Source: Anthoceros angustus
Lineage: Eukaryota; Plantae; Anthocerotophyta
DNA length: 64,000 bases
Assembly (NCBI GenBank): GCA_010909165.1
Contig: MU008167.1
Coordinates: 1 to 64,000 of the forward strand
Direction of reading: 5' to 3'
In this document: positions 14,409-64,000 of the stretch, piece by piece
Numbering within the stretch: the first letter of the stretch is position 1
How the letters are laid out: each line of letters opens with the position of its first letter
Notes under the pieces: generated by a model
Databases searched by the model: none
The model's input: the letters and a program-made list of their open reading frames with translations, nothing else
Told to the model about the DNA's origin: nothing
Translations under genes and position numbers: made by a program

Positions 14409-14440
<32 letters not shown>

Positions 14441-32480: not shown

Positions 32481-32999
32481 ACACTTCACCTGCAGCACAC
32501 GTTAGCCCTGGTCCGAGTCTTTCAGCTGCGGTCAGCCTCCTCCCCGTTGTCCTTCTTCCAGGGCAGAGCGCCGCCGCCGATTGTTCGCAACGCTCTTCCT
32601 GCCTTCAATTCTATGACCACAGTACCACAAGTGCGTTGCTTCCTTGGCGCTCGCTCCACACTTTCCTCTCCAGTGGCCCGAGGCGCGTGACGAGCTCTCC
32701 CACTGCTCGCGGCACTCCGCGTTTTTCCTTCTACCGGTCGCTCACGCCTCGCGGTTGGGTTCGGTCTCCTTTCGATGAAGCGCGAATAAGGCTCTTACAA
32801 CACGCGGCCCCGTAGGGCCATGAATGAGAGGATGGGTGGCACCCCATCTTATCACCGACATCGACATGGCGACAATGGAGTTCCAATGAGCTCACGTGTT
32901 TGGATGTCGCTCCTTCAAGGAGGACTACAAAACAAATATTATTTCACCTTTTGGCTTTTGATTCAACGTTTGAATGTGTCGTTTTGTTTCAACCTTTTG

Positions 33000-33720
33000 T
33001 GAAACGAGACGCTTGTTTGTTCGATGCATTTTGCAACTTTTAGCTTAGCTTTAGCCTCCCTTGAAATGGTTGGTAGCACTTTTCTCTTCTTAAAAGCACC
33101 TTGACTACTTCTTGGAGCCAATAATTTTTAGTTGGAGCTTTTCTTAAAAGCGATTGAGGTTGAATTATTATGCTTAAGAGCAACTTGAATCTTGTTATCA
33201 AGTTGAGCAACAATGCTGGTCATAACTTCCATGTATAATTTGCGATGGAAATCAATATTCAAAACTTGAGTGTGGAGCACTTGAATCTTGCACCAAGTTA
33301 TCCCACTCATAGTTTGATTGTTCAATGATATTGCTTAATATGCTTTTGTAGAACAGCAGTCCTTATGTTTAGAGGAAGTAGATAGTTTCTCTTGTCTCTT
33401 GAGATCTTTAAATTTATCTCTAGAGATATCTACTATTACTGGTATAAAAATACACTTCTTGGGTCCGAAAGTATTTTTAAATGCATCATTGATAATGCTT
33501 GCTTTATTTTTGTAATACTTGAGCATGTATTACAACAAGGTGCTTAGACACTTGACTTCCTTGAAAACTTGTTCGATTCGCATTGCATCTCATCAATGTG
33601 ATGCGATATTAAGCGATGAATCACGGTGCTGCGCATATGTTGACATTTTTCCAACATTTTGGCGTGCATAACTCCCTCGGTGTGAGTTGAGTTTAAAAGG
33701 CTAGCGAGATCGCTTGTTAA
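33000..33720 (-). pseudogene. Degenerate unidentified ORF-C (~240 codons); copies near 40750-41470, 49290-50030 and 57560-58270
   Basis: Consecutive open peptides joined by frameshifts or stops (SDLASLLNSTHTEGVMHAKMLEKCQH ... KNTFGPKKCIFIPVIVDIS ... NIDFHRKLYMEVM). No family recognised. Confidence 0.4.
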
Positions 33721-33845
33721 TTAATGATAAAAGGATCATTAACACACCAATGTTTTAAAACATAAATAAACAAAGATGTGTTATCAAGGAGAAAAGAACA
33801 AAACCCCGAGCAAATAAAACAAACCACACCTACCTCGGGGCTAGT

Positions 33846-33921
33846 GCTCACTTCCTTGTGCTCACTTCCGCTCGACTCTATAAATACTACATGTACTTGC
33901 TATTTCTAGCGTTTAGGGTTT
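33846..33921 (+). promoter_or_regulatory. Promoter-like block: twice GCTCACTTCC, TATAAATA and a telo-box (TTTAGGGTTT); present in all four units
   Basis: TATAAATA at 33879-33886 and TTTAGGGTTT at 33912-33921. Motif match only. Confidence 0.4.
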
Positions 33922-34359
33922 CACCCTCATCTCCTCCTTACAATAAAGAATATCCCATCCCTTGTTATTTCTAGCTAAGCATTCTTCTGTTTATAGCTAA
34001 ATATAATATATTAAATCACATTTACTCATTTTCATGATGGGCTCTCCCATCATCTCTCCTCCCTCAATAGAACTTCATTTTTATTTCTTATTATTTGCAA
34101 CTAGACATCATTTACTATGTTTTTCTTGTTTTCTCAGCCATGACTACTTTTATGAATGCGGGTTTTAAACAAGGGATGCGAGAATGGGCCCTCCACCTCG
34201 TAGGGGCATCGGGGTCATCCCGACTTTACTTTTGCTCACGATGACTCCTAGAGATCATGAGTCTTCTCACAACCATACAAACCACTTCTTCTAAGGAGAG
34301 AAGCCTACCAGTGGTTTCTCGACCAACTACTAAAAACTATCAAGGCGTCTCAGTGGTGA

Positions 34360-34752
34360 TCAAAGATCATTGAAGGTGGCATAAGAGCACGAAAGTTGGC
34401 ATAATCAAACACCATTGAAGATGACATAAAACCTTGAAGTATAAGACAAGGAAAAAGGCATAATCAAACACCATTGAAGATGACATAAGACCACGAAGTG
34501 GCGAAGACATTGAAAGTTGGCATAACTAAATACCTTTGAAGATGACATAAAACCTTTGAAGTGGGATAAGAGCACGAAAGTTGGCTCAATCAAACACCAT
34601 TGAAGATGACATAAGAGCATTGAAGTGGCATAAGACAAGGAAAGCTAGCATAATCAAACACCATTGAAGATGACATAAGAACCGAAGTGGCGAAGACAAC
34701 AAAAGTCATAATCAAACACCATTGAAGATGATATAAGACCTTGAAGGTGGCA
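34360..34752 (+). repeat. ~60 bp minisatellite (core AATCAAACACCATTGAAGATGACATAA), 6 monomers
   Basis: Direct reading. Confidence 0.9.
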
Positions 34753-35007
34753 AGAAAAAGCGCTATAAACTATAAAGTATATGGCATCATAATTGGGGAC
34801 TTATCTCAATGGATAAATGTTTGGGGCAAAGAGCTTTTAATGTCACTAATCGAAAGCGACCCCATGAGCTGGGTTCCACAAGGCGTTGGTACACATTACT
34901 AACTCACCCCAATGCATTGAGATATTTTAATACAAGATTTGTTAAAACACGATAGATACGCATTAAATCATGGCGAGATTTAGATCACGTTACCCATGAT
35001 CTAAATC

Positions 35008-35674
35008 TTGACCGCGATGAGGGTCCGCCTCGGTTTGGCTCATCCTCTTGCCTCTTCTCTTTCCACGTGCAGTTGTGGAGCTGCCATCGACGACTTCGGG
35101 TCCCATTTGGCGCGTTGTCCCGTGGAGGGGCAACGTATTGCTACGCATGACGCCGTTCGCGACGTCATGTTTTCGATAACTAAGGAGAGCGGATTTTTTC
35201 CGTATAGGGAGCGCCCATATACATTGCGTAATGGCGTGTCACTCAGGGCGGACCTTTTTTATACCAGGAGGGAGCAAATTTACATCGCTGATTTGGTTGT
35301 CATGGATCCCACGAGACTCGTATGCGAGCACGTCATCATCAACCCCGAGGTGGCGGAAGGATGCGCAACTAGCAAGACTCACAAGTACCCTCCTTTGCAA
35401 GACGGCCATGTTTTCATCCCCTCATCCTCGAGACTCATGGGGCTATGGGCAAGGACTTCTCTAGGTTAATTAAGGAGTGTGCAAAAGCCTATCACGAATG
35501 AATTGGAGGGCCTCCCCTTTCCTCTGTGGTGGCTTTCTTCGCCTTTGGGTTTTCATAGCCAGACAGCCGCGTTTATTTGTCGGACGGCTACATCGCGGGA
35601 CTGGCGGCTTCTTGACATTGGTGGTAGGTAGGCCCTTCATCATCCCCGATCACGATATCATTGGTGCGAGGTAG
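35008..35674 (+). mobile_element. 5'-truncated non-LTR retrotransposon end (CRE/R2-type zinc knuckle plus restriction-like endonuclease)
   Basis: RVRLGL..CSCG..DDFGSHLARC..GQRIATHDAVRD, RADL...ADLVVMDP, K..KY and FIPLILETHGAMG are hallmark RLE-clade C-terminal motifs. Confidence 0.85.
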
Positions 35675-36619
35675 TTACGGAAAGGCATTCGAGGGACTAG
35701 GACTTCCCTTTTACTATTAGCCCTTTTAGGTTGTTCCTCCTTGGACTTAAGGGTTGATGGCATTTCCTATCTCGCCTATTAAGGCGTCTACTCTACTCTT
35801 CTTACACATGATTAAAGTGCAACGTCCATTACTTTTATGCCTTTATTTTTTATTACCATGTTGTATTATGTCATTTTTTTATTTCTTATTATTTACAACT
35901 AGACATCATTTACTATGTTTTTCTTGTTTTCTCACCATGACTACTTTTATGGATGCGGGTTTTAAATGCTGGGAGGGGCATATCGGCACTCCATAGGGGT
36001 ATTTGTGGGTCATCCGACTTCACTTTACACTCACCATGACTCCTAGAGATCATGAGTCTTCTCACAAACATACAAAACCACTTCTTCAAGGAAAGCGTAA
36101 CCAAGACTTTTACATCAAAGTCGCCTTGGAGATTTGGAAGCCAATAGGCCTGGACAACATCCTAGGAGGTTGGGAAGCTAGTGGCCTTGGTGACATATTT
36201 ACAATGATTTACTTAACTTAAGAGAAAGTAAAGTCTCGCGTTATGAGGACTCGCATGAGGAGACCAACGTACCCCATCCGGAGGGACCAACTTAGCGGAT
36301 GCTGGAAATCGAAGAGCTTCACTCAGCTGAAGCTAAAGAGCAACTATCACTAGTTCATAGCGGTCGGTGGATTCGTAACTTCGTAAGAAAATTGTTGTCG
36401 TGCTTTAGCAAATCTTTCTTTAAGATCTCTTATTTTATTATATTGGGGTGATCAATCCCTAATTATGGTACCATATTCTTTATAATTTATAGTGCATTCT
36501 TAGATTATGCCATCTTTATGGTCTTGTGCCACCTTTATGGTCTTTGATTGTGCCACCTCTGTGGACTTTTGCCACCTTTCGTGGACTTTTGTTTTGCCAA
36601 CCTTGTGGTCTTCTCTCAT

Positions 36620-38430
36620 GCCACCTTATGCCACTTTCTACTTGATGAAGGTAGCTCCAGCTTGCTCTAAGGTGGGATGAAATAATCGTGTGGATCCGGA
36701 TCATCAAAACACTCGTTGCCTCCCTAATATTCCTTCTCCACATAGGTTTGCACATCATTACGCCATTTTGGAGGTGCTCGCACACACTCCACGACCTGCA
36801 CAACTTGACTACGTGAGGCTCGCTCAATGTTTGCTCGATGTGTGTTCACAAAAATGCATTGCGAGCATCGTAGTTTCTTCAACTCTTGTGTCAACCCAAC
36901 TGTGCACACTTGAGAGTTAGTACCACATTATGAGAAGCCTATCCACTTGTAGTTATGCTCCAACATTGCTTTCAATACATAGAAATGGATTTTTCACTCT
37001 AAGCAAATGTGACATGATACACATGCACAAAGTTCCAAATTCAGACTAGTACCCACAACTCGGCTCCTTCTTTCACATGTAACGTCGTTACATTGCTCCA
37101 AAAATAACAAAATGGTATCATTTTGTTCTTCTTGTTGAGCGCTAATAGATGGATATATCAAAACAATTACAATTGGTTGAGCATTTGGTGAGAAATTGCC
37201 CGCTTTCTGATTCGAATTCCTCAAGGCCCATGTTCCGTCGTTTTAGTGACTTAAAAACTACATGTTTGGCACCATTATGTTCCTCTTGTTGAGTTCTATC
37301 GATGATACCAAGATACAATTGGCCAAGTATTTTGCGAAAAACTCAGCCTCACTTTTTCGTCACCGCTAACCTCACATGGGCATTGGTTAGCTGGAGTTTG
37401 CTGGAGGAATGAAGAGTCTGCAGGAATCCTTCTTCAAACCAGCACCCTCTCATCTTTGGGCACCTCCAGATGCATAAGACGATTCTGTCGTCACGTTTGT
37501 GAAAACATCAGCCCTCAAAGTGTCTTTGTTGACCGTCTGAGCATCTCCTGGTGTGTAGAATGGGGTTTTACAAGCGCTCGTCTTGAGGACATGCTCGTCA
37601 ATTGCATCTCCATCAACCACCTGCACCTTTGCCAATCACATGAGCGTTTACGTCCTCACAGATTGTCCAAAAGTCTACATTTTTTTTGCTCACTGTGTGC
37701 ATACATGTGTCTTCATCAACCACTTGAGTGCCATATGAGTCTTCACCAGTTGCTGGCCGTTGCATATGTCTTCACCGCCGCTTTGGCCGTTGCATGTGTG
37801 TTCACATTGCCATTTTGTATTCTTGTGCACCTCTGTTTGTTTCCGTGGGCACAAGATGAACCCTCTTCCACAACATTGTCGGCATGTAAAGACATCACGT
37901 CAGATCAATGTCTTCCTTCACGCTGGAGTAAGAGCTGACCAATTTGCTTGCTACCAAATCCTTGCCTTCATCTCCGACACTGGGATTAGGTTTTTCTCAT
38001 TCTTCCTTGGCTCTCGCTGCAATTTCCTCACTTTCAGCAGAAAGCAGTTTACTTGTTATGCGTCCTCCTCGAGCAACTGTCCCCGCAGGCACGTGTACCC
38101 TTCACTAGTACCCTTCCACCGCCACTGCCTCCCAACATTGTTGTGTTTGCATCGATTCCACAGCCTTGCCTTGCCTTGCCTTTCTTCCACCTATGCTTCA
38201 ACCCTAATTTTTCCTCCAACCAGGCGGGGCGTTGGAAGGCGTGCATGAGAGGCCCATTTGATTCGACCTCTCCTTTTTGTGATGAAGTGGGACGCTCCTC
38301 GGGAGGTGGGCCTGTTCCTCCACTTTCTTCCCCTTTTGTCCGTAGGCCTCTTCTCTTCCTTGTTTACCTTCTCTTGAAGTTGCGCAATTTGGGGTCTCAC
38401 TCAATTAGCGTTGCTCTTCAATTCATGAAC
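36620..38430 (-). pseudogene. Degenerate unidentified ORF-B (~600 codons); copies near 45690-47490, 53970-55760 and 61370-63170
   Basis: Overlapping ORF-track peptides from different units tile into one reading: charged N-terminus, acidic middle, globular-looking C-terminus (QPIVIVLIYP...EFGTLCMCIMSHLL...KLRCSQC...PPKWRNDVQ). Confidence 0.45.
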
Positions 38431-39026
38431 TAATCTACATTATTGAATACAGACATGATCAATTCCTTCACGCTGGAGTAAGAGCTGACCAATTTGCTTG
38501 CTACCAAATCCTTGCCTTCATCTCCAGAGCGTCGATTAGGTTTTTCTCATTCTTCCTTGGCTCGCTGCAATTTCCTCACTTTCAACGCAGTTTACTTGTT
38601 ATGCGTCCTCCTCGAGCAACCTCCCCATCACACCGTGTACCCTTCACTAGTACCCTTCCACCGCCACTGCCTCCCAACATTGTTGTGTTTGCATCGATTC
38701 CACAGCCTTGCCTTGCCTTGCCTTTCTTCCACCTATGCTTCAACCCTAATTTTTCCTCCAACCAGTGACGTTGAAGGCGTGCATGAGAGGCCCATTTGAT
38801 TCTGACCTCTCCTTTTGTGATGAAGTGGGACCCGCTCCTCGGGAGGTGGGCCTGTTCCTCCACTTTCTTCCCCTTTTGTCCGTAGGCCTCTTCTCTTCCT
38901 TGTTTACCTTCTCTTGAAGTTGCGCAATTTGGGGTCTCACTCAATTAGCGTTGCTCTTCAATTCATGAACTAATCTACATTATTGAATACACATGACATG
39001 ATCAATTCCTTCCGGATATCCATTGC

Positions 39027-39375
39027 TCATTCCTCCAAATAAGCATGCTTTCGACATAATGGCATGTAAATATCTTCATCCCCAACAACGACTTGAGGTA
39101 ATAATTTTCCAATTCTATGTGTGAATGGTGCAACCTTGCCACATAATTTACATTTGGCTAGCAATGTTTCTATTCTATCAACTAATGGAATCAATTGTAA
39201 TAACTTTCCAAATAGTTTTTGACTATCCCCGTCCAATCCCGCCACCATTATTTTTCTTTCCTTTATCTCGCGCCTTTCGGTTGCTAGTCTACCTTCGTTC
39301 TAATCGTATGCTTCTTAACAAGTAACTTGTTTTGCCACTAAACATAGGTACCATAATAATGAAAAATTTCTCCAT
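39027..39375 (-). pseudogene. Thymidine kinase (type II, TK1 family), internally deleted and frameshifted (unit 1)
   Basis: PMFSGKTS P-loop, VAGLDGD, zinc ligands CKLC and PLCRKH. Confidence 0.88.
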
Positions 39376-42127
39376 TTTTATCATCGTCACTTATGGGATT
39401 ATATTCAGAAACAAAACAAGTATTCTTTTGAAAGTAAGAAGGTCTCAAGCTGATCAAGCTAGAGTAAGAAATTCTAAACTAATCCAACTAGAACAAGAAA
39501 CTCTAAAGTGATCGTGCTACATTATGAGTTGTTTTCTAATGGATTTTGTCTAATCAACTAAATAAACAATCACAAATGATCGAACAAAGAATGCATGATT
39601 CAATTGATAAGTCAAAGCTTAAGATTTTGCATTATGAATTACAAATCATGAAAATTGTGCATGCGAAATGGCCGTGAACACAATAATCACGCGAGAAGTT
39701 TCAAAAGAATGCTTATTTTCGGTGAAAACTGTTTATATAACTTTCTATTAATTTTTTACTAAGCAAGCAACAGTCAAAGCTCTATGTGAAACTTATTAAG
39801 ATTATGGTCATCAGTAACCGCTTTCCAGTTAATTACAATTTCTTTGAATCCTTCACATTCCAATCAATTATAATTAACTTGTTCCATTGGGCTCTCTTCG
39901 CATTGGTTTCTTCCAGTTTTGTAACTCACTCTGCAAATTATTACCTACTCAAAATGATTGAATTAGTATCTAATAGGCCTCTCTGGAGCAGGCCTCATAG
40001 ACTCACATTAATTAATCCAACATTGCAAATCGATGACCTCTTGAGTCATGACATTGTGCCTCTTGCTTCCTCTATTTCTTGTGATAGGGCTAACACTAAC
40101 AAGGATGGCGTGAAGGTAATCGCGAAAGAGTAAAACTTGGACTAAGTCAACATGTAGATCGTCGAAAATCAACACATAAAACAAAGAATTTGAAAACTCA
40201 AAACTTGAAATCAAAAATCAAAAGTTGAGCCACAAAACAAATAAGGAAATCAACAGCTCAAAACAAAGATCGAAATCCCAAAATGAATATAAACAAATAA
40301 GTGCGGATGTACAATGTCATTTACGATTGCACAACATTGTTTTGTTACAATGTCTAATGCCATTTACAATACACAACACCACTTGTAAAATTTTCGTTAC
40401 GAATGCACGTCACAATGAAAACGAAAATAGATCTTAAACATGTAGTTCGACCATATCTAAACATCTTTTATATATACACACATAGGTATATAGAATTTGT
40501 ATCTTGCATTTCATTCAAAAGAAGCCCGTGCGGACCAATGGGCGGCCTCGTAGGGCTCTTACAACACGCCCGTGGAATGCTGAGAGGATGGGTGGCACCC
40601 CATCTTATCACCGATTCTTGATTACAATGGAGTTCCAATGAGCTCACGTGTTTGGATGTCGCTCCTTCAAGGGAGGACTACAAAACAAATATTATTTCAC
40701 CTTTTGGCTTTTGATTCAACGTTTGAATGTGTCGTTTTTGTTTCAACCTTTTGTGAAACGAGACGCCGTTTGTTTGCTTGATGCATTTTGCAACTTTTAG
40801 CTTAGCTTTAGCCTCCTTGAAATGGTTGGTAGCACTTTTCTCTTCTTAAAAGCATCTTGACTACTTCTTGGAGCCAATAATTTTTAGTTGGAGCTTTTCT
40901 TAAAAGCGATTGAGGTTGAATTATTATGCTTAAGAGCAACTTGAATCTTGTTATCAAGTTGAGCAACAATGCTGGTCATAACTTCCATGTATAATTTGCG
41001 ATGGAAATCAATATTCAAAACTTGAGTGTGGAGCACTTGAATCTTGCACCAAGTTATCCCACTCATAGTTTGATTGTTCAATGATATTGCTTAATATGCT
41101 TTTGTGAACCGTGCAACGGTCCTTATGTTTAGAGGAAGTAGATAGTTTCTCTTGTCTCTTGAGATCTTTAAATTTATCTCTAGAGATATCTACTATTACT
41201 GGTATAAAAATACACTTCTTGGGTCCGAAAGTATTTTTCGTCGCCATTGATAATGCTTGCTTTATTTTTGTAATACTTGAGCATGTATTACAACAAGGTG
41301 CTTAGACACTTGACTTCCTTGAAAACTTGTTCGATTCGCATTGCATCTCATCAATGTGATGCGATATTAAACGATGAATGCGGTGCTCGCATATGTTGAC
41401 ATTTTTCCAACATTTTGGCGTGCATAACTCCCTCGGTGTGAGTTGAGTTTAAAAGGCTAGCGAGATCGCTTGTTAATTAATGATAAAAGGATCATTAACA
41501 CACCAATGTTTTAAAACATAAATAAAACAAAGATGTGTTATCAAGGAGAAAAGAACAAAACCCGAGCAAATAAACAAACCACACCTACCTCGGGGCTAGC
41601 AGCTCACTTCCTTGTGCTCACTTCCTGCTCACTCTATAAATACTACATGTACTTGCTATTTCTAGCGTTTAGGGTTTCACCCTCATCTCCTCCTTACAAT
41701 AAAGAATATCCCATCCCTTGTTATTTCTAGCTAAGCATTCTTCTGTTTATAGCTAAATATAATATATTAAATCACATTTACTCATTTTTCATGATGGGCT
41801 CTCCCATCATCTCTCCTCCCTCAATAGAACTTCATTTTTTATTTCTTATTATTTGCAACTAGACATCATTTACTATGTTTTTCTTGTTTTCTCACCATGA
41901 CTACTTTTATGAATGCGGGTTTTAAACAAGGGGATGCGAGAATGGGCCCTCCACCTCGTAGGGGCATCGGGGTCATCCCGACTTTACTTTTGCTCACGAT
42001 GACTCCTAGAGATCATGAGTCTTCTCACAACCATACAAACCACTTCTTCTAAGGGAGAGAAGCCTACCAGAGTTTCTCGACCAACTACTAAAAACTATCA
42101 AGACGTCTCTGTCCGAGTGGCGCGATC

Positions 42128-42512
42128 AAAGATCATTGAAGGTGGCATAAGAGCACGAAAGTCGGTATAATAAAACACCATTGAAGATGACATAAAACCA
42201 AGTGGCATAAGACAAGGAAAGGCGGCATAATCAAACACCATTGAAGATGACATAAGACCACAAGTGGCGTAAGACATTGAAAGTTGGCATAACTAAATAC
42301 CTTTGAAGATGACATAAAACCAAGTGGGATAAGAGCACAGTTGGCTCAATCAAACACCATTGAAGATGACATAAGAGCATCAAGTGGCATAAGACAAGGA
42401 AAGCTAGCATAATCAAACACCATTGAAGATGACATAAGAGCACGAAGTGGCGAAGACAACAAAAGGCATAATCAAACACCATTGAAGATGATATAAGACC
42501 ACCGCTCAAAGG
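42128..42512 (+). repeat. ~60 bp minisatellite, 6 monomers
   Basis: Direct reading. Confidence 0.9.
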
Positions 42513-42771
42513 TGGCAAGAAAAAGCGCTATAAACTATAAAGTATATGGCATCATAATTGGGGACTTATCTCAATGGATAAATGTTTGGGGCAAAGAGCT
42601 TTTAGTATCGCTTAATCGAAAGCGACCCCATGAGCTGGGTTCCACAAGGCGTTGGTACACATTACTAACTCACCCCAATGCATTGAGATATTTTAATACA
42701 AGATTTGTTAAAACACGATAGTGCATTAAATCATGGCGAGATTTAGATCACGTTACCCATGATCTAAATCT

Positions 42772-43427
42772 TGACCGCGATGAGGGTCCGCCTCGGTTTG
42801 GCTCATCCTCCGGCCTCTTCTCTTTCCACGTGCGTTGTGGAGCGCCATCGGCGATTCCGGTCCCATTTGGCCCGTTGTCCCGTGGAGGGGCAACGTGTTG
42901 CTACGCATGACGCCGTTTGGCGGCGTCATGTTTTCGATAACTAAGGAGGCGGATTTTTCCGTGCGAGCGCCCATATACATTGCATAATGGCGTGTCACTC
43001 GGGCGGACCTTTTTATACTAGGGGAGCAAATTTACATCGCTCATGTGGTTGTCACGGATCCCACGAGACTCAGATGCGAGCACGTCATCATCAACCCCGG
43101 CTGGGTGGCGGAAGGATGCGCAACTAGCAAGACTCACAAGTACCCTCCTTTGCAAGACGGCCATGTTTTCATCCCCTCATCCTCGAGACTCATGGGGCTA
43201 TGGGCAAGGACTTCTCTAGGTTAATTAAGGAGTGTGCAAAGCCTATCACAGCCAGGGTGGAGGCCTCCCCTTTCCTCTGTGGTGGCTTTCTTTCGCCTTT
43301 GGGTTTTCATAGCGTAAGCGGCTAACGTTGTTTATGGGGCCACGGTAGCAGGACTAGCGGCTTCTTGACATTGGTGGTAGGTAGGCCCTTCATCATCCCC
43401 GATCACGATATCATTGGTGCGAGGTAG
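42772..43427 (+). mobile_element. RLE retrotransposon 3' fragment (unit 2)
   Basis: Homolog of 35008-35674. Confidence 0.85.
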
Positions 43428-50679: not shown

Positions 50680-51060
50680 AAAGATCATTGAAGGTGGCAT
50701 AAGAGCACGAAGTCGTATAATAAAACACCATTGAAGATGACATAAGAACCAAGTGGCATAAGACAAGGAAAGGCATAATCAAACACCATTGAAGATGACA
50801 TAAGACCACCAAGTGGCGTAAGACATTGAAAGTTGGCATAACTAAATACCTTTGAAGATGACATAAGAGCACCAAGTGGGATAAGAGCACAGTTGGCTCA
50901 ATCAAACACCATTGAAGATGACATAAGAGCATTGAAGTGGCATAAGACAAGGAAAGCTAGCATAATCAAACACCATTGAAGATGACATAAGAGCAAGTAA
51001 GACAACAAAAGTGGCATAATCAAACACCATTGAAGATGATATAAGACCACCAAGTGGCAA
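50680..51060 (+). repeat. ~60 bp minisatellite, 6 monomers
   Basis: Direct reading. Confidence 0.9.
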
Positions 51061-51317
51061 GAAAAAGCGCTATAAACTATAAAGTATATGGCATCATAAT
51101 TGGGGACTTATCTCAATGGATAAATGTTTGGGGCAAAGAGCTTTTAGTATCGCTTAATCGAAAGCGACCCCATGAGCTGGGTTCCACAAGGCGTTGGTAC
51201 ACATTACTAACTCACCCCAATGCATTGAGATATTTTAATACAAGATTTGTTAAAACACGATAGTCTGCATTAAATCATGGCGAGATTTAGATCACGTTAC
51301 CCATGATCTAAATCTTG

Positions 51318-52876
51318 ACGCGATGAGGGTCCGCCTCGGTTTGGCTCATCCTCCGCCTCTTCTCTTTCCACGTGCGGTTGTGGAGCTGCCATCGACGATT
51401 CCGGATCCCATTTGGCCCGTTGTCCCGTGGAGGGCAACGTGTTACGCGACGCCGCCGTTTGGCGGCGTCATGTTTTCGATAACTAAGGAGGCGGATTTTT
51501 TCCATACAGGGAGCGCCCATATACATTGCGTAATGGCGTGTCACTCAGGGCGGACCTTTTTTATACTAGGGGGGAGCAAATTTACATCGCTGATGTGGTT
51601 GTCACGGATCCCACGAGACTCCGTGCGAGCACGTCATCATCAACCCCGGCGGGTGGCGGAAGGATGCGCAACTAGCAAGACTCACAAGTACCCTCCTTTG
51701 CAAGACGGCCATGTTTTCATCCCCTCATCCTCGAGACTCATGGGGCTATGGGCAAGGACTTCTCTAGGTTAATTAAGGAGTGTGCAAAAGCCTATCACGA
51801 CCACAGAATTGGAGGCCTCCCCTTTCCTCTGTGGTGGCTTTCTTTTGCCTTTGGGTTTTCATAGCGCTGCTAACGTTGTTTATAGGACGGCCACAGCGCA
51901 GGACTAGCGGCTTCTTGACATTGGTGGTAGGTAGGCCCTTCATCATCCCCGATCACGATATCATTGGTGCGAGGTAGTTACGGAAAGGCATTCGAGGACT
52001 AGGACTTCCCTTTTTATACTAGGGGAGCAAATTTACATCGCTCATGTGGTTGTCACGATCCCACGAGACTCCGTGCGAGCACGTCATCATCAACCCCCGG
52101 CCGGGTGGCGGAAGGATGCGCAACTAGCAAGACTCACAAGTACCTCCTTTGCAAGACGGCCATGTTTTCATCCCCTCATCCTCGAGACTCATGGGGCTAT
52201 GGGCAAGGACTTCTCTAGGTTAATTAAGGAGTGTGCAAAAGCCTATCACGACCACAGAATTGGAGGCCTCCCCTTTCCTCTGTGGTGGCTTTCTTTTGCC
52301 TTTGGGTTTTCATAGCGCTGCTAACGTTGTTTATAGGACGGCCACAGCGCAGGACTAGCGGCTTCTTGACATTGGTGGTAGGTAGGCCCTTCATCATCCC
52401 CGATCACGATATCATTGGTGCGAGGTAGTTACGGAAAGGCATTCGAGGACTAGGACTTCCCTTTTTATACTAGGGGAGCAAATTTACATCGCTCATGTGG
52501 TTGTCACGGATCCCACGAGACTCCGTGCGAGCACGTCATCATCAACCCCGGGCTGGGTGGCGGAAGGATGCGCAACTAGCAAGACTCACAAGTACCCTCC
52601 TTTGCAAGACGGCCATGTTTTCATCCCCTCATCCTCGAGACTCATGGGGCTATGGGCAAGGACTTCTCTAGGTTAATTAAGGAGTGTGCAAAAGCCTATC
52701 ACGATACGGGTGGAGGCCTCCCCTTTCCTCTGTGGTGGCTTTCTTTTGCCTTTGGGTTTTCATATGTGAAAGCACCTTCGCGTTTATAGGACGGCCACAG
52801 CGCAGGACTAGCGGCTTCTTGACATTGGTGGTAGGCCTTCATCATCCCCGATCACGATATCATTGGTGCGAGGTAG
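51318..52876 (+). mobile_element. RLE retrotransposon 3' fragment (unit 3), endonuclease half triplicated
   Basis: Homolog of 35008-35674; repeats start at 51555, 52009 and 52460. Confidence 0.85.
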
Positions 52877-55830
52877 TTACGGAAAGGCATTCGAGGACTA
52901 GGACTTCCCTTTACTATTAGCCCTTTTAGGTTGTTCCTCCTTGGACTTAAGGGTTGATGGCATTTCCTATCTCGCCTATTAAGAACGTCTACTCTACTCT
53001 TCTTACACATGATTGAAGTGCAACGTCCATTACTTTATGCCTTTATTTTTCATTACCATGTTGTATTATGTCATTTTTTTTATTTCTTATTATTTGCAAC
53101 TAGACATCATTTACTATGTTTTTCTTGTTTTCTCAGCCATGACTACTTTTATGGATGCGGGTTTTAAATGCGGGCTGGGAGGACGGGTATCGGCACTCCA
53201 TAGGGGTATTTGTGGGTCATCCCCGACTTCACTTTCTCACCATGACTACTTTTATGGATGCGGGTTTTAAATGCGGGCTGGGAGGACGATCGGCGGCCTC
53301 CATAGGGGTATTTGTGGGTCATCCGACTTCACTTCTGCTCACCATGACTCCTAGAGATCATGAGTCTTCTCACAAACATACAAAACCACTTCTTCCAAGG
53401 GAGAGAAAGCGTAACAAGAGTTCTCGACCAACTACTAAAACCCATCAAGACTTTTGTGTCCGAGTCGCCTTGGAGATTTGGAAGCCAATAGGCCCGGACA
53501 ACATCCTAGGAGGTTGGGAAGCTAGCGAGCCTTGGTGACATATTTACAATGATTTACTTAACTTAAGAGAAAGTAAAGTCTCGCGTTATGAGGACTCGCG
53601 AGGAGACCAACGTACCCCATCCGACGGGACCAACTTAGCGGATGCTGGAAATCGAAGAGCTTCACTCAGCTGAAGCTAAAGAGCAAGCTATCACTAGTTC
53701 ATAGCGGTCGGTGGATTCGTAACTTCGTAAGAAAATTGTTATCGTGCTTTAGCAAATCTTTCTTTAAGATCTCTTATTTTATTATATTGGGGTGATCAAT
53801 CCCTAATTATGGTACCATATTCTTTATAATTTATAGTGCATTCTTAGATTATGCCATCTTTATGGTCTTGTGCCACCTTTATGGTCTTTGATTGTGCCAC
53901 CTCTGTGGACTTTTGCCACCTTCGTGGACTTTTGTTTTGCCAACCTTGGTGGTCTTTTCTCATGCCACCTTATGCCACTTTCTACTTGATGAAGGTAGCT
54001 CCAGCTTGCTCTAAGGTGGGATGAAATAATCGGAACGAGATCCGGATCATCAAAACACTCTGCCTCCTAATATTCCTTCTCCACATAGGTTTGCACATCA
54101 TTCTCGCCATTTTGGAGGTGCTCATGCACACTCCACGACCTGCACAACTTGACTACGTGAGGCCTTGCTCAATGTTTGCTCGATGTGTGTTCACAAAATC
54201 TGCGAGCATCGTAGTTTCTTCAACTCTTGTGTCAACCCAACTGCACACTTGAGAGTTAGTACCACATTATGAAGCCTATCCACTTGTAGTTATGCTCCAA
54301 CATTGCTTTCAATACATAGAAATGGATTTTTCACTCTAAGCAAATGTGACATGATACACATGCACAAAGTTCCAAATTCGAGACTAGTACCCACAACTCG
54401 GCTCCTTCTTTCACATGTAACTGTCGTTACATTGCTCCAAAAATAACAAAATGGTATCATTTTGTTCTTCTTGTTGAGCGCTAATAGATGGATATATCAA
54501 AACAATTACAATTGGTTGAGCATTTGGTGAGAAATTGCCCGCTTTCTCTGATTAATTCCTCAAGGCCCATGTTCCGTCGTTTTAGTGACTCAAAAACTAC
54601 ATGTTTGGCACCATTATGTTCCTCTTGTTGAGTTCTATCAGATGATACCAAGATTACAATTGGCCAAGTATTTTGCGAAAAACTCAGCCTCACTTTTTTC
54701 GTCACCGCTAACCTCACATGGGCATTGGTTAGCTGGAGTTTGCTGGAGGAATGAAGAGTCGTGCAGGAATCCTTCTTCAAACCAGCACCCCTCTCATCTT
54801 TGGGCACCTCTAGATGCATAAGGATTACATCATCACGTTTGTGAAAACATCAGCCCTCAAAGTGTCTTTGTTGACCGTATGAGCATCTCCTGTGTGTGAA
54901 TGGGGTTTTACGAGCGCTCGTCTTGAGGACATGCTCGTCAATTGCATCTCCATCAACCACTGCACCTTGCCACCACATGAGCGTTTACGTCCTCACAGAT
55001 TGTCCAAAAGTCTACATTTTTTTTGCTCACTGTGTGCATACATGTGTCTTCATCAACCACTTGAGTGCCTGTATATGAGTCTTCACCAGTTGACTGAGCG
55101 CCGTTGCATATGTCTTCACCGCGCTCGAGCGCTGCATGTGTGTTCACTGTTGCCATGTTTTGTATTCTTGTGCACCTCCTGTTTGTTTAGTGGGCACAAG
55201 ATGAACCCTCTTCCACAACATTGTCGGCATGTAAAGACATCACGTCAGATCAATGTCTTCCTTCATGGAGTAAGAGCTGACCAATTTGCTTGCTACCAAA
55301 TCCTTGCCTTCATCTCCGGATAGCGTCGCCCGATTAGGTTTTTCTCATTCTTCCTTGGCTCTCGCTGCAATTTCCTCACTTTCAACGCAGAAACTACTTG
55401 TTATGCGTCCTCCTCGAGCAATCCCCGTCAGACGTGTACCCTTCACTAGTACCCTTCCACCGCCACTGCCTCCCAACATTGTTGTGTTTGCATCGATTCC
55501 CGGCCTTGCCTTGCCTTGCCTTTCTTCCACCTATGCTTCAACCCTAATTTTTCCTCCAACCAGGCGGGGCGTTGGAAGGCGTGCATGAGAGGCCCATTTG
55601 ATTCTGACCTCTCCTTTTGTGATGAAGTGGGACCTGCTCCTCGGGAGGTGGGGCCTGTTCCTCCACTTTCTTCCCCCTTTTGTCCGTAGGCCTCTTCTCT
55701 TCCTTGTTTACCTTCTCTTGAAGTTGCGCAATTTGGGGTCTCACTCAATTAGCGTTGCTCTTCAATTCATGAACCAATCTACATTATTGAATACACAGAC
55801 ATGATCAATTCCTTCCTGGATATCCATTGC

Positions 55831-56186
55831 TCATTCCTCTAAATAAGCATGCTTTCGACATAATGGCATGTAAATATCTTCATCCCCAACAACGATTTGA
55901 GGTAATAATTTTCCAATTCTATGTGTGAATGGTGCAGCAACCTTGCTAAATAATTTACATTTGGCTAGCAATGTTTCTATTCTATCAACTAATGGAATCA
56001 ATTGTAATAACTTTCCAAATAGTTTTTGGACTATCCCGTCAATCGCCACCATTATTTTTCTTTCCTTTATCTCGCACTTAACTACGGTTGCTAGTCTACC
56101 GCTTCTCGTTCTAATCGTATGCTTCTTAACAAGTAACTTGTTTTGCCACTAAACATAGGTACCATAATAATGAAAAATTTCTCCAT
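55831..56186 (-). pseudogene. Thymidine kinase remnant (unit 3)
   Basis: Homolog of 39027-39375. Confidence 0.85.
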
Positions 56187-58927
56187 TTTATCATCGTCAC
56201 TTATGGGATTATATTCAGAAACAAAACAAGTATTCTTTTGAAAGTAAGAAGGTCTCAAGCTGATCAAGCTAGAGTAAGAAATTCTAAACTAATCCAACTA
56301 GAACAAGAAACTCTAAAGTGATCGTGCTACATTATGAGTTGTTTTCTAATGGATTTTGTCTAATCAACTAAATAAACAATCACAAATGATCAAAACAAAG
56401 AATACATGATTCAATTGATAAGTCAAAGCTTAAGATTTTGCATTATGAATTACAAATCATGAAAATTGTGCATGCGAAATGGCGTGAACACAATAATCAC
56501 GAGAAGTTTCAAAGAATGCTTATTTTCGGTGAAAACTGTTTATATAACTTTCTATTAATTTTTACTAACGACCAACAGTCAAAGCTCTATGTGAAACTTA
56601 TTAAGATTATGGTCTTGATAACGCTTTCCGATTAATTGCAATTTCTTTGAATCCTTCACATTCCAATCAATTATAATTAACTTGTTCCATTGGGCTCTCT
56701 TCGCATTGGTTTCTTCGGTTTTGTAACTCACTCGCAAATTATTACCTACTCAAAATGCTTGAATTAGTATCTAATAGGCCTCTCTGGAGCAGGCCTCATA
56801 GACTCACATTAATTAATCCAACATTGCAAATCGATGACCTCTTGAGTCATGACATTGTGCCTCTTGCTTCCTCTATTTCTTGTGACAGGCTAACACTAAC
56901 AAGGATGGCGTGAAGGTAATCCTGAAGAGTAAAACTTGGACTAAGTCAACATGTAGATCGTCGAAAATCAACACATAAAACAAAGAATTTGAAAACTCAA
57001 AACTTGAAATCAAAAATCAAAAGTTGAGCCACAAAACAAATAAGGAAAATCAACAGCTCAAAACAAAGATCGAAATCCCAAAATGAATATAAACAAATAA
57101 GGGTGCGGATGTACAATGTCATTACATGCACAACATTGTTTTGTTACAATGTACAATGCCATTTACAATACACAACACCACTTGTAAAATTTTCAGTTAC
57201 GAATGCACGTCACAATGAAAACGAAAATAGATCTTAAACATGTAGTTCGACCATATCTAAACATCTTTTATATATACACACATAGGTATATAGAATTTGT
57301 ATCTTGCATTTCATTCAAAAGAAGCCCGTAGCCGTGCCAATGGGCGGCCTCGTGAACTCTTACAACCTGACCCGTAGAGACATGAATGAGAGGATGGGTG
57401 GCACCCCATCTTATCACCGATTCGATTGGCGACAATGGAGTTCCAATGAGCTCACGTGTTTGGATGTCGCTCCTTCAAGGAGGACTACAAAACAAATATT
57501 ATTTCACCTTTTGGCTTTTGATTCAACGTTTGAATGTGTCGTTTTGTTTCAACCTTTTGTGAAACGAGACGCGTTTGTTTGCTTGATGCATTTTGCAACT
57601 TTTAGCTTAGCTTTAGCCTCCCTTGAAATGGTTGGTAGCACTTTTCTCTTCTTAAAAGCACCTTGACTACTTCTTGGAGCCAATAATTTTTAGTTGGAGC
57701 TTTTCTTAAAGGCTTGAGGTTGAATTATTATGCTTAAGAGCAACTTGAATCTTGTTATCAAGTTGAGCAACAATGCTGGTCATAACTTCCATGTATAATT
57801 TATGGAAATCAATATTCAAAACTTCGAGTGTGGAGCACTTGAATCTTGCACCAAGTTATCCCACTCATAGTTTGATTGTTCAATGATATTGCTTAATATG
57901 CTTTTGTGAACCAGAACCGTCCTTATGTTTAGAGGAAGTAGATAGTTTCTCTTGTCTCTTGAGATCTTTAAATTTATCTCTAGAGATATCTACTATTGCA
58001 CAGTATAAAATACACTTCTTGGGTCCGAAAGTATTTTTTTCCGCCATTCAAGTAATGCTTGCTTTATTTTTGTAATACTTGAGCATGTATTACAACAAGG
58101 TGCTTAGACACTTGACTTCCTTGAAAACTTGTTCGATATGCATTGCATCTCATCAATGTGATGCGATATTAAGCGATGAATCGCTCGCATATGTTGACAT
58201 TTTTCCAACATTTTGGCGTGCATAACTCCCTCGGTGTGAGTTGAGTTTAAAAGGCTAGCGAGATCGCTTGTTAATTAATGATAAAAGGATCATTAACACA
58301 CCAATGTTTTAAAACATAAATAAACAAAGATGTGTTATCAAGGAGAAAAGAACAAAACCCCGAGCAAATAAAACAAAACCACACCTACCTCGGGGCTAGC
58401 AGCTCACTTCCTTGTGCTCACTTCCCAAAGGCTCAGCTCTATAAATACTACATGTACTTGCTATTTCTAGCGTTTAGGGTTTCACCCTCATCTCCTCCTT
58501 ACAATAAAGAATATCCCATCCCTTGTTATTTCTAGCTAAGCATTCTTCTTGTTTATAGCTAAATATAATATATTAAATCACATTTACTCATTTTTCATGA
58601 TGGGCTCTCCCATCATCTCTCCTCCCTCAATAGAACTTCATTTTTATTTCTTATTATTTGCAACTAGACATCATTTACTATGTTTTTCTTGTTTTCTCAG
58701 CCATGACTACTTTTATGAATGCGGGTTTTAAACAAGGATGCGAGAATGGGCCCTCCACCTCGTAGGGGCATCGGGGTCATCCGACTTTACTTTTGCTCAC
58801 GATGACTCCTAGAGATCATGAGTCTTCTCACAACCATACAAAACCACTTCTTCTAAGGAGAGAAGCCTACCAGAGTTTCTCGACCAACTACTAAAAACTA
58901 TCAAGACGTCTCTCCGAGTGGCGCAGT

Positions 58928-59480
58928 CAAAGATCATTGAAGGTGGCATAAGAGCACGAAAGTTGGCATAACTAAATACCTTTGAAGATGACATAAAACC
59001 AAGTGGCATAAGACAAGGAAAGGCATAATCAAACACCATTGAAGATGACATAAGACCACCAAGTGGCGAAGACATTGAAAGTTGGCATAACTAAATACCT
59101 TTGAAGATGACATAAGAGCACCTGGTATAATAAAACACCATTGAAGATGATAAGAGCACAAGTGGCATAAGACAAGGAAAGGCGGCATAATCAAACACCA
59201 TTGAAGATGACATAAGACCACCAAGTGGCGAAGACATTGAAAGTTGGCATAACTTCTAAATACCTTTGAAGATGACATAAGAGCAAGTGGGATAAGAGCA
59301 CGAAAGTTGGCTCAATCAAACACCATTGAAGATGACATAAAAGCAAGTGGCATAAGACAAGGAAAGCTAGCATAATCAAACACCATTGAAGATGACATAA
59401 GAAACCAAGTGGCGGAAGACAACAAAAAACATAATCAAACACCATTGAAGATGATATAAGACCACTGTTCAAAGGTGGCA
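58928..59480 (+). repeat. ~60 bp minisatellite, 9 monomers
   Basis: Direct reading. Confidence 0.9.
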
Positions 59481-59737
59481 AGAAAAAGCGCTATAAACTA
59501 TAAAGTATATGGCATCATAATTGGGGACTTATCTCAATGGATAAATGTTTGGGGCAAAGAGCTTTTAGTATCGCCTAATCGAAAGCGACCCCATGAGCTG
59601 GGTTCCACAAGGCGTTGGTACACATTACTAACTCACCCCAATGCATTGAGATATTTTAATACAAGATTTGTTAAAACACGATGTGCATTAAATCATGGCG
59701 AGATTTAGATCACGTTACCCATGATCTAAATCTTGAG

Positions 59738-60387
59738 ACCGATGAGGGTCCGCCTCGGTTTGGCTCATCCTCCGGCCTCTTCTCTTTCCACGTAGGTTGT
59801 GGAGCTGCCATCGACGATTCCGGTCCCATTTGGCCCGTTGTCCCGTGGAGGGGCAACGATGTACGCATGACGCCGCTTGGCGGCGTCATGTTTTCGATAA
59901 CTAAGGAGGCGGATTTTTTCCGTGCAGGCGCCCATATACATTGCATAATGGCGTGTCACTCGTATGACCTTTTTATACTAGGGGAGCAAATTTACATCGC
60001 TCATGTGGTTGTCACGGATCCCACGAGAGACTCAGTGTCGAGCACGTCATCATCAACCCCGGTGGGTGGCGGAAGGATGCGCAACTAGCAAGACTCACAA
60101 GTACCTCCTTGCAAGACGGCCATGTTTTCATCCCCTCATCCTCGAGACTCATGGGGCTATGGGCAAGGACTTCTCTAGGTTAATTAAGGAGTGTGCAAAA
60201 GCCTATCACGTCCACGGTGGAGGGCCTCCCCTTTCCTCTGTGGTGGCTTTCTTTCGCCTTTGGGTTTTCATAGCAGAAAGCGCTAACGTTGTTTATAGGG
60301 GCGCTGACGGGGACTAGCGGCTTCTTGACATTGGTGGTAGGTAGGCCCTTCATCATCCCCGATCACGATATCATTGGTGCGAGGTAG
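59738..60387 (+). mobile_element. RLE retrotransposon 3' fragment (unit 4)
   Basis: Homolog of 35008-35674. Confidence 0.85.
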
Positions 60388-63240
60388 TTACGGAAAGGCA
60401 TTCGAGGACTAGGACTTCCCTTTACTATTAGCCCTTTTAGGTTGTTCCTCCTTGGACTTAAGGGTTGATGGCATTTCCTATCTCGCCTATTAAGAACGCT
60501 CTACTCTACTCTTCTTACACATGATTAAAGTGCAACGTCCATTACTTTTATGCCTTTATTTTTTTATTACCATGTTGTATTATGTCATTTTTTTATTTCT
60601 TATTATTTGCAACTAGACATCATTTACTATGTTTTTCTTGTTTTCTCACCATGACTACTTTTATGGATGCGGGTTTTAAATGCGGTGGGAGGACTGGGTA
60701 TCGGCACTCCATAGGGGTATTTGTGGGTCATCCCGACTTCACTTTCTCACCATGACTCCTAGAGATCATGAGTCTTCTCACAAACATACAAAACCACTTC
60801 TTCCAAGGGAGAAACGTAACAAGAGTTCTCGACCAACTACTAAAACCCATCAAGACTTTTGTGTCCGAGTCGCCTTGGAGATTTGGAAGCCAATAGGCCT
60901 GGACAACATCCTAGGAGGTTGGGAAGCTAGCAGCCTTGGTGACATATTTACAATGATTTACTTAACTTAAGAGAAAGTAAAGTCTCGCGTTATGAGGACT
61001 CGACGAGGGAGACCAACGCATTCCCCATCCGACGGGACCAACTTAGCGGATGCGAAATCGAAGAGCTTCACTCATTGAAGCTAAAGAGCAAGCTATCACT
61101 AGTTCATAGCGGTCGGTGGATTCGTAACTTCGTAAGAAAATTGTTATCGTGCTTTAGCAAATCTTTCTTTAAGATCTCTTATTTTATTATATTGGGGTGA
61201 TCAATCCCTAATTATGGTACCATATTCTTTATAATTTATAGTGCATTCTTAGATTATGCCATCTTTATGGTCTTGTGCCACCTTTATGGTCTTTGATTGT
61301 GCCACCTCAGGACTTTTGCCACCTTCGTGGACTTTTGTTTTGCCAACCTTGGTGGTCTTTTCTCATGCCACCTTATGCCACTTTCTACTTGATGAAGGTA
61401 GCTCCAGCTTGCTCTAAGGTGGGATGAAATAATCGTAACCCAGATCCGGATCATCAAAACACTGCCTCCCTAATATTCCTTCTCCACATAGGTTTGCACA
61501 TCATTCGCCATTTTGGAGGTGCTCATGCACACACTCCACGACCTGCACAACTTGACTACGTGAGGCCCTGCTCAATGTTTGCTCGATGTGTGTTCACAAA
61601 AATGCATTGCGAGCATCGTAGTTTCTTCAACTCTTGTGTCAACCCAACTGCACACTTGAGAGTTAGTACCACCGATGAGAAGCCTATCCACTTGTAGTTA
61701 TGCTCCAACATTGCTTTCAATACATAGAAATGGATTTTTCACTCTAAGCAAATGTGACATGATACACATGCACAAAGTTCCAAATTCGAGACTAGTACCC
61801 ACAACTCAGCTCCTTCTTTCACATGTAACTGTTGTTACATTGCTCCAAAAATAACAAAAATGGTATCATTTTGTTCTTCTTGTTGAGCGCTAATAGATGG
61901 ATATATCAAAACAATTACAATTGGTTGAGCATTTGGTGAGAAATTGCCCGCTTTCCTGGGTTGTAATTCCTCAAGGCCCATGTTCCGTCGTTTTAGTGAC
62001 TCAAAAACTACATGTTTGGCACCATTATGTTCCTCTTGTTGAGTTCTATCGATGATACCAAGATTACAATTGGCCAAGTATTTTGCGAAAAACTCAGCCT
62101 CACTTTTTTCGTCGCTAACCTCACATGGGCATTGGTTAGCTGGAGTTTGCTGGAGGAATGAAGAGTCTGTGCAGGAATCCTTCTTCAAACCAGCACCCCT
62201 CTCATCTTTGGGCACCTCTAGATGCATAAGGCGATTACGTCATCACGTTTGTGAAAACATCACCCTCAAAGTGTCTTTGTTGGACCGTATGAGCATCTCC
62301 GGTGTGTAGAATGGGGTTTTACGAGCGCTCGTCTTGAGGACATGCTCACAATTGCATCTCCATCAACCACCTGCACCTTTGCTACCACATGAGCGTTCGT
62401 CCTCACAGTGCCCAAAAGTCTACATTTTTTGCTCACCTGTGTACACATGTGTCTTCATCAACCGCTTGAGTGCACACATGTGTCTTCATCAACCGCTTGA
62501 GTGCTGTATATGAGTCTTCACAGTTGCCCGGTGCGCCTTTCACCGGCCCGCTGGCGCCGTTGCATGTGTTCACCACTGCCTTTGTATTCTTGTGCACCTC
62601 CTGTTTGTTTCCGTGGGCACAAGATGAACCCTCTTCCACAACATTGTCGGCATGTAAAGACATCACGTCAGATTAATGTCTTCCTTCACTGGAGTAAGAG
62701 CTGACCAATTTGCTTGCTACCAAATCCTTGCCTTCATCTCCGTGTAGCCCGATTAGGTTTTTCTCATTCTTCCTTGGCTCTCGCTGCAATTTCCTCACTT
62801 TCAAGCAGTTTACTTATGCGTCCTCCCTCGAAAACAGCTGTCCCCGTCCACGGCACGTACCCTTCACTAGTACCCTTCCACTCTTGTCTCCCAACATTGT
62901 TGTGTTTGCATCTCGATTCGGCCTTGCCTTGCCTTGCCTTTCTTCCACCTATGCTTCAACCCTAATTTTCCTCCAACCAGTGAGACGTTGGGCGTGCATG
63001 AGAGGCCCATTTGATTCCCCGACCTCTCCTTTTGTGATGAAGTGGGACTGCTCCTCGGGAGGTGGGCCTGTTCCTCCACTTTCTTCCCCTTTTGTCCGTA
63101 GGCCTCTTCTCTTCCTTGTTTACCTTCTCTTGAAGTTGCGCAATTTGGGGTCTCACTCAATTAGCGTTGCTCTTCAATTCATGAACTAATCTACATTATT
63201 GAATACATGACATGATCAATTCCTTCCGGATATCCATTGC

Positions 63241-63597
63241 TCATTCCTCCAAATAAGCATGCTTTCGACATAATGGCATGTAAATATCTTCATCCCCAAC
63301 AACGACTTGAGGTAATAATTTTCCAATTCTATGTGTGAATGGTGCGACAACCTTGCCACATAATTTACATTTGGCTAGCAATGTTTCTATTCTATCAACT
63401 AATGGAATCAATTGTAATAACTTTCCAAATAGTTTTTGTACTATCCCCGTCCAATCGCCACCATTATTTTTCTTTCCTTTATCTGTCGACTTAACTACGG
63501 TTGCTAGTCTACCTTCTCGTTCTAATCGTATGCTTCTTAACAAGTAACTTGTTTTGCCACTAAACATAGGTACCATAATAATGAAAAATTTCTCCAT
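63241..63597 (-). pseudogene. Thymidine kinase, open 118 aa frame lacking the central DEAQF segment (unit 4)
   Basis: MEKFFIIMVPMFSGKTSYLLR...GKLLQLIPLVDRIETLLAKCKLCG...GDEDIYMPLCRKH. Confidence 0.88.
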
Positions 63598-64000
63598 TTT
63601 ATCGCATACTTATGGGATTATATTCATGAAACAAAACAAGTATTCTTTTGAAAGTAAGAAGGTCTCAAGCTGATCAAGCTAGAGTAAGAAATTCTAAACT
63701 AATCCAACTAGAACAAGAAACTCTAAAGTGATCGTACAACATTATGAGTTGTTTTCTAATGGATTTTGTCTAATCAACTAAATAAACAATCACAAATGAT
63801 CGTAACAAAGAATACATGATTCAATTGATAAGTCAAAGCTTAAGATTTTGCATTATGAATTACAAATCATGAAAATTGTGCATGCGAAATGGCCGTGAAC
63901 ACAATAATCACGCGAGAAGTTTCAAAAGAATGCTTATTTTACGGTGAAAACTGCTTATATAACTTTCTATTAATTTTTACTAACGGTACAATAGCAGTCA

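Follow-up and report, generated by a model that had tools for sequence, protein, structure and literature searches.

Four head-to-tail mosaic units with a thymidine-kinase relic in Anthoceros angustus: a probable long-monomer satellite

The first 64,000 nucleotides of contig MU008167.1 of Anthoceros angustus (Anthocerotophyta; assembly GCA_010909165.1), the whole stretch analysed here and called the window, raise the question of what kind of repeat fills their right half. A preliminary description, made from the letters alone, had seen there a tandem array of a mosaic unit with captured gene pieces. It had put the array forward as a candidate for an undescribed system, and had named a non-autonomous rolling-circle element, a re-integrated circular DNA and a nascent macrosatellite as mechanisms that would fit. 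Of these three the last fits best. We judge, with a probability of about 0.65, that the array is a long-monomer satellite (macrosatellite) that arose by block amplification of a pre-existing junk mosaic. Since mosaic satellites with long monomers are a known kind of repeat, the term undescribed system is not warranted, and the array is a new example of that known kind.

From position 32787 to the window end the DNA forms a purely direct, head-to-tail array of four colinear units, as observed both by self-BLASTN and by mapping ten sub-features of unit 1 onto the rest of the array. The units start at 32787, 40551, 49090 and 57353, which gives periods of 7764, 8539 and 8263 bp, and they align colinearly over 2-6 kb at 92-95% identity (E=0, self-BLASTN). 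Their unequal lengths are due to tandem duplications that are private to single units, and once these are subtracted a unit core of ~7.2-7.35 kb is left. The units and their private duplications are as follows.

32787 to 40550, plus strand: unit 1, 7764 bp, with a sharp left border against unrelated GC-rich retrotransposon debris (self-BLASTN, junction alignment)
40551 to 49089, plus strand: unit 2, 8539 bp (self-BLASTN, feature mapping)
49090 to 57352, plus strand: unit 3, 8263 bp (self-BLASTN, feature mapping)
57353 to 64000, plus strand: unit 4, at least 6648 bp, ending at the window edge (self-BLASTN, feature mapping)
37913 to 39012, plus strand: ~550-bp tandem duplication private to unit 1 (37913-38469 against 38463-39012, 94% identity, with a 7-nt overlap at the joint; self-BLASTN)
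43528 to 45441, plus strand: ~637-bp block present three times, private to unit 2, copies 97-98% identical and including block A' (see below; self-BLASTN)
51558 to 52912, plus strand: 451-bp block present three times, private to unit 3, 96% matches, within the restriction-like-endonuclease (RLE)-like fragment (see below; Tandem Repeats Finder (TRF), self-BLASTN)
58937 to 59465: extra 60-bp repeats private to unit 4

The four colinear units and the private duplications agree with what had been described before, the unit lengths within a few bases. In the junction alignment the left border of the array, at ~32787, is abrupt, and no similarity was detectable between the array and the 32.7 kb to its left. 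The units are thus well over 1 kb long and follow one another in uninterrupted head-to-tail order, as in a macrosatellite. Approximately 70 bp around each unit junction (for example 49060-49130) make up the most variable part of the unit; they hold a CCAAT...GGGCGG stretch and three CCCGTAG-like words.

Judged from their sequence, the units are genuinely distinct copies, because each has a structural variant of its own and because a four-way MAFFT alignment contains 58 parsimony-informative sites at which two units stand against two. Independent random errors would, by our own estimate, be expected to yield only ~1 such site. The 58 sites split 30/16/12 over three groupings, and this conflict, a mosaic pattern, argues for exchange or conversion between units and not for simple stepwise duplication. 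Distinct copies that evolve in concert are again what a macrosatellite contains, with alignment noise as a caveat on this comparison. When substitutions alone are counted in the same alignment, the units differ from each other by 2.4-3.6%.

The contents of the unit bear most directly on its origin, and here a thymidine kinase (TK) is the one captured gene piece that can be demonstrated. We scanned with Pfam all stop-to-stop pieces of at least 42 aa in unit 2 and of at least 48 aa in units 1 and 3, and TK (PF00265) was the only significant family in these units (E 1.4e-11 and 3.4e-16). When full-length TKs taken from giant-virus contigs served as the reference, tblastn placed one minus-strand TK relic in each of the four units.

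39030 to 39375, minus strand: TK relic of unit 1, TK1-type (tblastn, translation, Pfam, PDB)
47564 to 47916, minus strand: TK relic of unit 2 (Pfam TK 1.4e-11, profile positions 117-175 of 176; tblastn)
55834 to 56186, minus strand: TK relic of unit 3 (tblastn, feature mapping)
63241 to 63597, minus strand: TK relic of unit 4, a single 118-codon ATG-to-stop open reading frame (ORF)

The relic retains reference residues ~5-31, with the P-loop VPMFSGKT, and ~100-181, the C-terminal zinc/lasso half, which is the half matched by thymidine kinases in the PDB (7e-07). The ~65 central residues between them are missing identically in 4/4 units. Between its P-loop and its C-terminal zinc/lasso domain the relic therefore has only an incomplete TK1 alpha/beta core, and it measures ~118 codons as against ~180-200 in reference TKs. 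As the central deletion is common to all four units, it predates the amplification. In unit 1 the correct TK frame stays open for 82 codons (39030-39275). The 118-codon ORF of unit 4 may be real or may be the product of compensating sequencing errors, and the frameshifts in TK copies may themselves be sequencing errors. Pseudogene calls on these copies, like any annotation of this error-rich region, need polished sequence. A thymidine kinase had been claimed for every unit, and it is indeed there as an intronless relic without its centre. The plural in captured gene pieces found no support, as the other ORFs gave no family, structure or homologue match.

The remaining modules recur in each unit, and we list them by their unit-1 coordinates.

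34370 to 34755, plus strand: left fold-back arm, ~6 copies of ~60-bp tandem repeats (TRF); copies at 42136-42526, 50681-51062 and 58937-59465 (expanded in unit 4)
36450 to 36650, minus strand: right fold-back arm, ~43-bp repeats and ~60 bp of unique sequence, inverted relative to 34370-34810 at 74-76% identity; copies at 45510-45709, 53794-53994 and 61199-61397
35005 to 35570, plus strand: putative C-terminal ORF fragment of an R2-like RLE retrotransposon without long terminal repeats (LTRs) (translation; one weak PDB match); copies at 42768-43313, at 51312-51865, 52008-52316 and 52459-52764 (inside the triplication), and at 59730-60281
34078 to 34300, plus strand: block A, ~220 bp; copies at 41836-42059, 50392-50612 and 58641-58862
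35876 to 36095: block A', a direct repeat of A (85%); copies at 43627-43849, 44261-44478, 44899-45116, 53077-53405 and 60590-60808
32850 to 34070, unstranded: AT-rich module, 31-38% GC; copies at 40624-41827, 49151-50384 and 57412-58633
36660 to 38460, unstranded: GC-richer module (42-52%) that looks non-coding and has a 31-bp mini-repeat; copies at 45719-47537, 54004-55806 and 61407-63217

The fold-back module that had been proposed is borne out by TRF and self-comparison, which show 60-bp repeats with an inverted partner. The inverted match includes ~55-60 bp of unique sequence beside the repeats, and the 24-mer core of the 60-bp repeats occurs 13 times against 0 expected. Between the arms lie the RLE-like tail and block A'. 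The 2.2-kb module (34370-36650) resembles Pack-type DNA transposons and Foldback elements in having inverted arms of subterminal repeats around unrelated DNA. It differs from them in that its arms are of different length and share only 74-76% identity, and the TK lies outside the arms. Neither terminal inverted repeats nor a target duplication were identified for this module.

Translation of the RLE-like piece gives a CCHC-type knuckle (C-x-C...H...C), then AD-x12-D, then K..KY. This order is the one known from the C-terminal restriction-like endonuclease of R2/NeSL-type elements, and the candidate fragment at 35005-35570 can be read with the pattern (A/P)D-x12-D. The only PDB sequence found at E<=10 is an R2 protein (9nl2_A, residues 941-1020 of 1121), a weak match at E=0.38. 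Pfam gave no match to this piece, and none was found in a word-index protein search that applied a length filter; a single-sequence AlphaFold model has a pLDDT of 37 and is unusable. Pfam detected no reverse transcriptase (RT; RVT) domain upstream of the piece or in the scanned units, and what sits upstream are the 60-bp repeats. The stretch is probably, if tentatively, the 5'-truncated tail of an R2-type element. The motifs of the retrotransposon end in the preliminary description thus stand in register with R2, whereas its sole database support is the PDB match and there is no RT. Compared with R2/NeSL-type elements, the array fragment amounts to the last ~180 codons without the RT, and it would be a passenger in the unit rather than its engine.

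The AT-rich module runs across the unit junction into the AT-rich block that holds the TK, and its short minus-strand ORFs yielded no recognisable family (Pfam) and no viral relatives. The GC-richer module of 1.8 kb is Pfam-negative, and neither it nor the AT-rich modules gave a family, RNA or viral match. A recurring EDC4_C match (E 0.0064) scored 16.7 bits where the cutoff is 27; it was gone in the better-joined unit-3 copy and was therefore rejected as noise. Among the stop-to-stop pieces of units 1-3, Pfam scans found no transposase, Rep/helicase, integrase or RT. Rfam at three stringencies found no RNA gene in the array, and ARAGORN found none. Together with checks of the unit border and of primer-binding sites, these scans bear out the earlier statement that no transposase, Rep/helicase, RT, rRNA or LTR is visible. 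A 5S-like relic had also been named as part of the unit, and this has no support in Rfam, where the 5S model stayed without a match whether the search used the gathering threshold, a cutoff of E<=1 (over 32 kb) or, for a single unit, E<=10. The motif AGGATGGGTGGCACC just downstream of the unit junction recalls the box-C region of 5S rRNA and may have been the source of that call, again without Rfam support. Ten ORFs of the window had no exact match in the protein collection, and exact-word scans of metagenome contigs gave no match.

If the array is a long-monomer satellite, a heterochromatin-like stretch of ~7.2 kb would already have been a patchwork before it was amplified. This patchwork would have comprised a fold-back element with 60-bp subterminal repeats and a 5'-truncated R2-like tail lodged between its arms. 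In addition it would have held a 220-bp block in two copies, a non-coding stretch of higher GC content and, within AT-rich DNA, the internally deleted, intronless TK relic. Tandem duplication would have followed, then expansion and partial homogenisation by gene conversion, replication slippage and unequal exchange, whether sister-chromatid or homologous. Later on these processes would also have made the 450-640-bp duplications private to single units. In support, the components of the unit are all fragments, and not one of them would be able to mobilise or copy it. The 450-640-bp tandem duplications, which single units gained very recently and whose copies are 96-98% identical, also support it. 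We infer both the recombinational mechanism and a unit that has no function or mobility of its own.

Several points weigh against this reading. Only one end of the array, the left, is visible, and the signature that separates unequal exchange from rolling-circle or circle insertion is unreadable there. The copy number (at least 4) and the arrangement are read from one 64-kb window alone, the many indel errors mean that missing ORFs count for little, and misalignment near indels may account for some of the mosaic site pattern. Four copies are also few for a satellite, and the array may be only a local segmental amplification. Should the satellite reading be true, its value is modest, as one more well-resolved case of how a long-monomer satellite starts. 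Young arrays of few units are rarely caught, and this one could serve studies of satellite birth.

Three groups of long repeats invite comparison. The Sobo satellite of the wild potato Solanum bulbocastanum has a 4.7-kb monomer in an array of ~360 kb, built as a mosaic of LTR, satellite and genomic DNA, and the same candidate amplification mechanisms have been named for it (PMC3648361). Both Sobo and the present array thus consist of kilobase-scale mosaic monomers of retrotransposon, shorter satellite and genomic DNA set head to tail in a repeat-rich region. The present monomer is larger (7.2 kb), with a TK relic and an R2-like tail in place of LTR sequence, and at least 4 units are seen. Among human macrosatellites, D4Z4 units embed an intronless copy of DUX4. 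D4Z4, RNU2 and the 7.3-kb tRNA array at 1q23.3 likewise consist of direct tandem units of 3-7 kb that reportedly vary by unequal exchange (PMC3018141, PMC4132748, PMC4041453). The human units are GC-rich and carry a functional or transcribed gene, whereas the gene in the present array is gutted, nothing suggests function, and the host is a plant. The third group is the amplified repeats of the male sex chromosome of Marchantia polymorpha, which reportedly embed multicopy genes, in work ascribed to Okada in 2001 and Ishizaki in 2002. There too gene copies are said to have been co-amplified with repeats, in non-recombining DNA, but those repeats reportedly carry intact male-specific genes.

The array could instead have been born from extrachromosomal circular DNA, with a 7.2-kb circle excised, replicated by rolling circle and re-integrated as a concatemer. 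We regard this as unlikely. Head-to-tail units of uniform phase agree with it, and a circular-DNA or rolling-circle origin would indeed give the same picture as the array that is seen. Circles derived from plant satellite repeats are reported and have been proposed as an amplification route (PMC2543021, cited in PMC3648361). The direct repeat A/A' and the fold-back arms could also promote excision. However, nothing in the sequence requires such an origin. As A/A' lies inside the unit and not at the unit junction, it does not mark a circularisation point. Given the substitutions of 2.4-3.6% and the private duplications, any concatemer would since have evolved in place by ordinary processes.

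The quality of the sequence bears on a further explanation, that all or part of the array is an artefact of assembly, in which a noisy long-read assembler over-expanded or mis-joined a repeat. Differences between the units comprise 1059 gap events as against 876 substitutions, with 69% of the gaps being of 1 bp and 37% lying in homopolymer context. Per kb there are about 25 indels against 21 substitutions in the array and 56 against 53 in the repeats of the left half of the window, so that these older repeats show the same ~one-to-one ratio of gaps to substitutions. In real divergence between paralogues, substitutions normally outnumber indels several-fold. The most likely source of the window is a long-read assembly that was imperfectly polished and still carries residual read error. 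With such error the true inter-unit identity is probably above 92-95%, the lack of long ORFs in 64 kb says little, and the absence of any ORF above ~280 codons is attributable to residual indels. Indels exceed substitutions throughout the window, as in an unpolished or poorly polished assembly, and such assemblies fail in repeats. Nevertheless we give an artefact only a slight chance. Each unit has its own structural variant of the 450-640-bp class, and a single true copy that was read repeatedly would show only private random errors and not 58 two-against-two variants.

Inter-unit identity is also uneven by module. It mostly reaches 97-100% in block A, in the left AT-rich module and in the arms of the fold-back, against 90-94% in the GC-richer modules, namely the RLE tail and 36660-38460. 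This unevenness could be due to error bias or to faster decay of GC/CpG-rich DNA.

The source of the TK relic was next considered. The relic is intronless, being contiguous over the positions of two introns of a lycophyte TK1 gene. Exon skipping was rejected as the source of its central deletion, as the gap begins within exon 2 of that gene and ends within exon 3. Since the relic is contiguous at the intron sites and its deletion ignores exon borders, the donor would have been a processed transcript or an intronless gene. A word-index protein search with the TK piece, restricted by its length filter, gave no match. A full-library search with that piece returned 1651 matches, and the closest TK among 1.84 billion representative proteins is at most ~54% identical. 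The named relatives are a mix of plants and metagenomes, with plant TKs 45-49% identical; 22 giant-virus TK loci are about 37-48% identical to the relic and score as well as the plant TKs. Plant TKs (45-49%) and giant-virus TKs (41-48% in this comparison) are equally distant, and the relic may have come from a processed copy of a host gene or from foreign DNA, perhaps that of a virus. Literature searches found no relevant TK-bearing liverwort repeat.

From this follows a bolder proposal, in which the 2.7-kb, junction-spanning AT-rich block with the intronless TK would be a foreign (giant-virus-like or horizontally acquired) remnant co-amplified with transposon debris, or in which the unit would still be spreading through 7.2-kb circles. 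If so, the array would record viral endogenisation or the circle-driven birth of a satellite. We hold this to be a long shot; when the array was compared with the giant-virus TK loci by tblastx, nothing matched beyond the TK.

Helitrons are known for the capture of gene fragments and can form tandem arrays, and a non-autonomous Helitron-like or other mobile element that had captured the TK and further fragments could have given tandem copies by reading through its terminator. The foreign gene piece in the unit would fit such an element. The rolling-circle mechanism named in the preliminary description nevertheless failed on its terminal signals at the only visible array end. There the sequence common to the units begins TA(A/G)GGCTCTTAC in the junction alignment, which is no 5' TC terminus after a host A. 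Among GC-rich hairpins with CTRR behind them, a single one recurs between units (2, 3 and 4), and it is located within the RLE-like coding stretch, away from the unit border; the junction folds no better than shuffled sequence (z = -1.8). Thus none of the ends of a Helitron, with 5' TC, 3' CTRR, a hairpin at the border and insertion between A and T, was found. In addition, Pfam scans found no Rep/helicase in the window, and the TK is the only captured gene piece that can be demonstrated. A Helitron-like origin is for these reasons very improbable.

Least tenable is the idea that an LTR element recombined into a tandem array (LTR-internal-LTR-internal), or that a pararetrovirus of 7-8 kb was integrated as a concatemer. 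The size of the unit, similar to that of caulimovirid genomes and LTR elements, and the Gypsy debris in the flank might suggest either, but the domain scans largely refute both. Pfam found no gag-pol or viral domains in the scanned units, neither RT, RNase H, protease or integrase nor a movement or coat domain. There was also no primer-binding-site-like match to TGGTATCAGAGC, the unit border in the junction alignment has neither a TG start nor a CA end, and the unit is unlike the flanking Gypsy sequences. A vector or transgene concatemer was rejected, as there was no plasmid match.

The 32.7 kb to the left of the array have 50-55% GC in strongly strand-skewed blocks. Degraded Gypsy sequence in them includes a YLDD motif at 21379 and, at 22402-22740, an RNase H domain (E 1e-12). 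Among named proteins the nearest to this domain comes from Marchantia polymorpha (67% identity), and DNA of that species matches over 271 bp at 74.5%. These figures hint at a liverwort-like or other bryophyte genome, and probably at a species other than M. polymorpha. Direct, LTR-like repeats of 1.3 kb lie at 7877-9137 and 18016-19307 (88%), and degraded Gypsy gag-pol follows the second (19400-25000). A 2-kb inverted duplication (18-2012 and 2161-4142, 85%, with a spacer of ~150 bp) forms a large palindrome in GC-rich repeat DNA. Closer to the array there are tandem duplications of ~750 bp present three times (26133-28380), of 264 bp present twice (28344-28877) and of ~780 bp present twice (29288-30872). 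With several flank duplications at several scales, the neighbourhood appears prone to tandem duplication, which speaks for the satellite reading.

A near-palindromic 14-mer, CCTACCACGGTAGG, has 21 matches against ~0 expected, counted on both strands with one mismatch allowed, so that palindromic variants score on both strands. Its small clusters are confined to the left half of the window, which is rich in retrotransposons.

555-626, 3572-3624, 4856-4908, 7064-7157, 13091-13125, 28796-28809 and 31212-31303: clusters of CCTACCACGGTAGG

Finally, a (TATG)n microsatellite of ~49 copies occupies 14331-14524.

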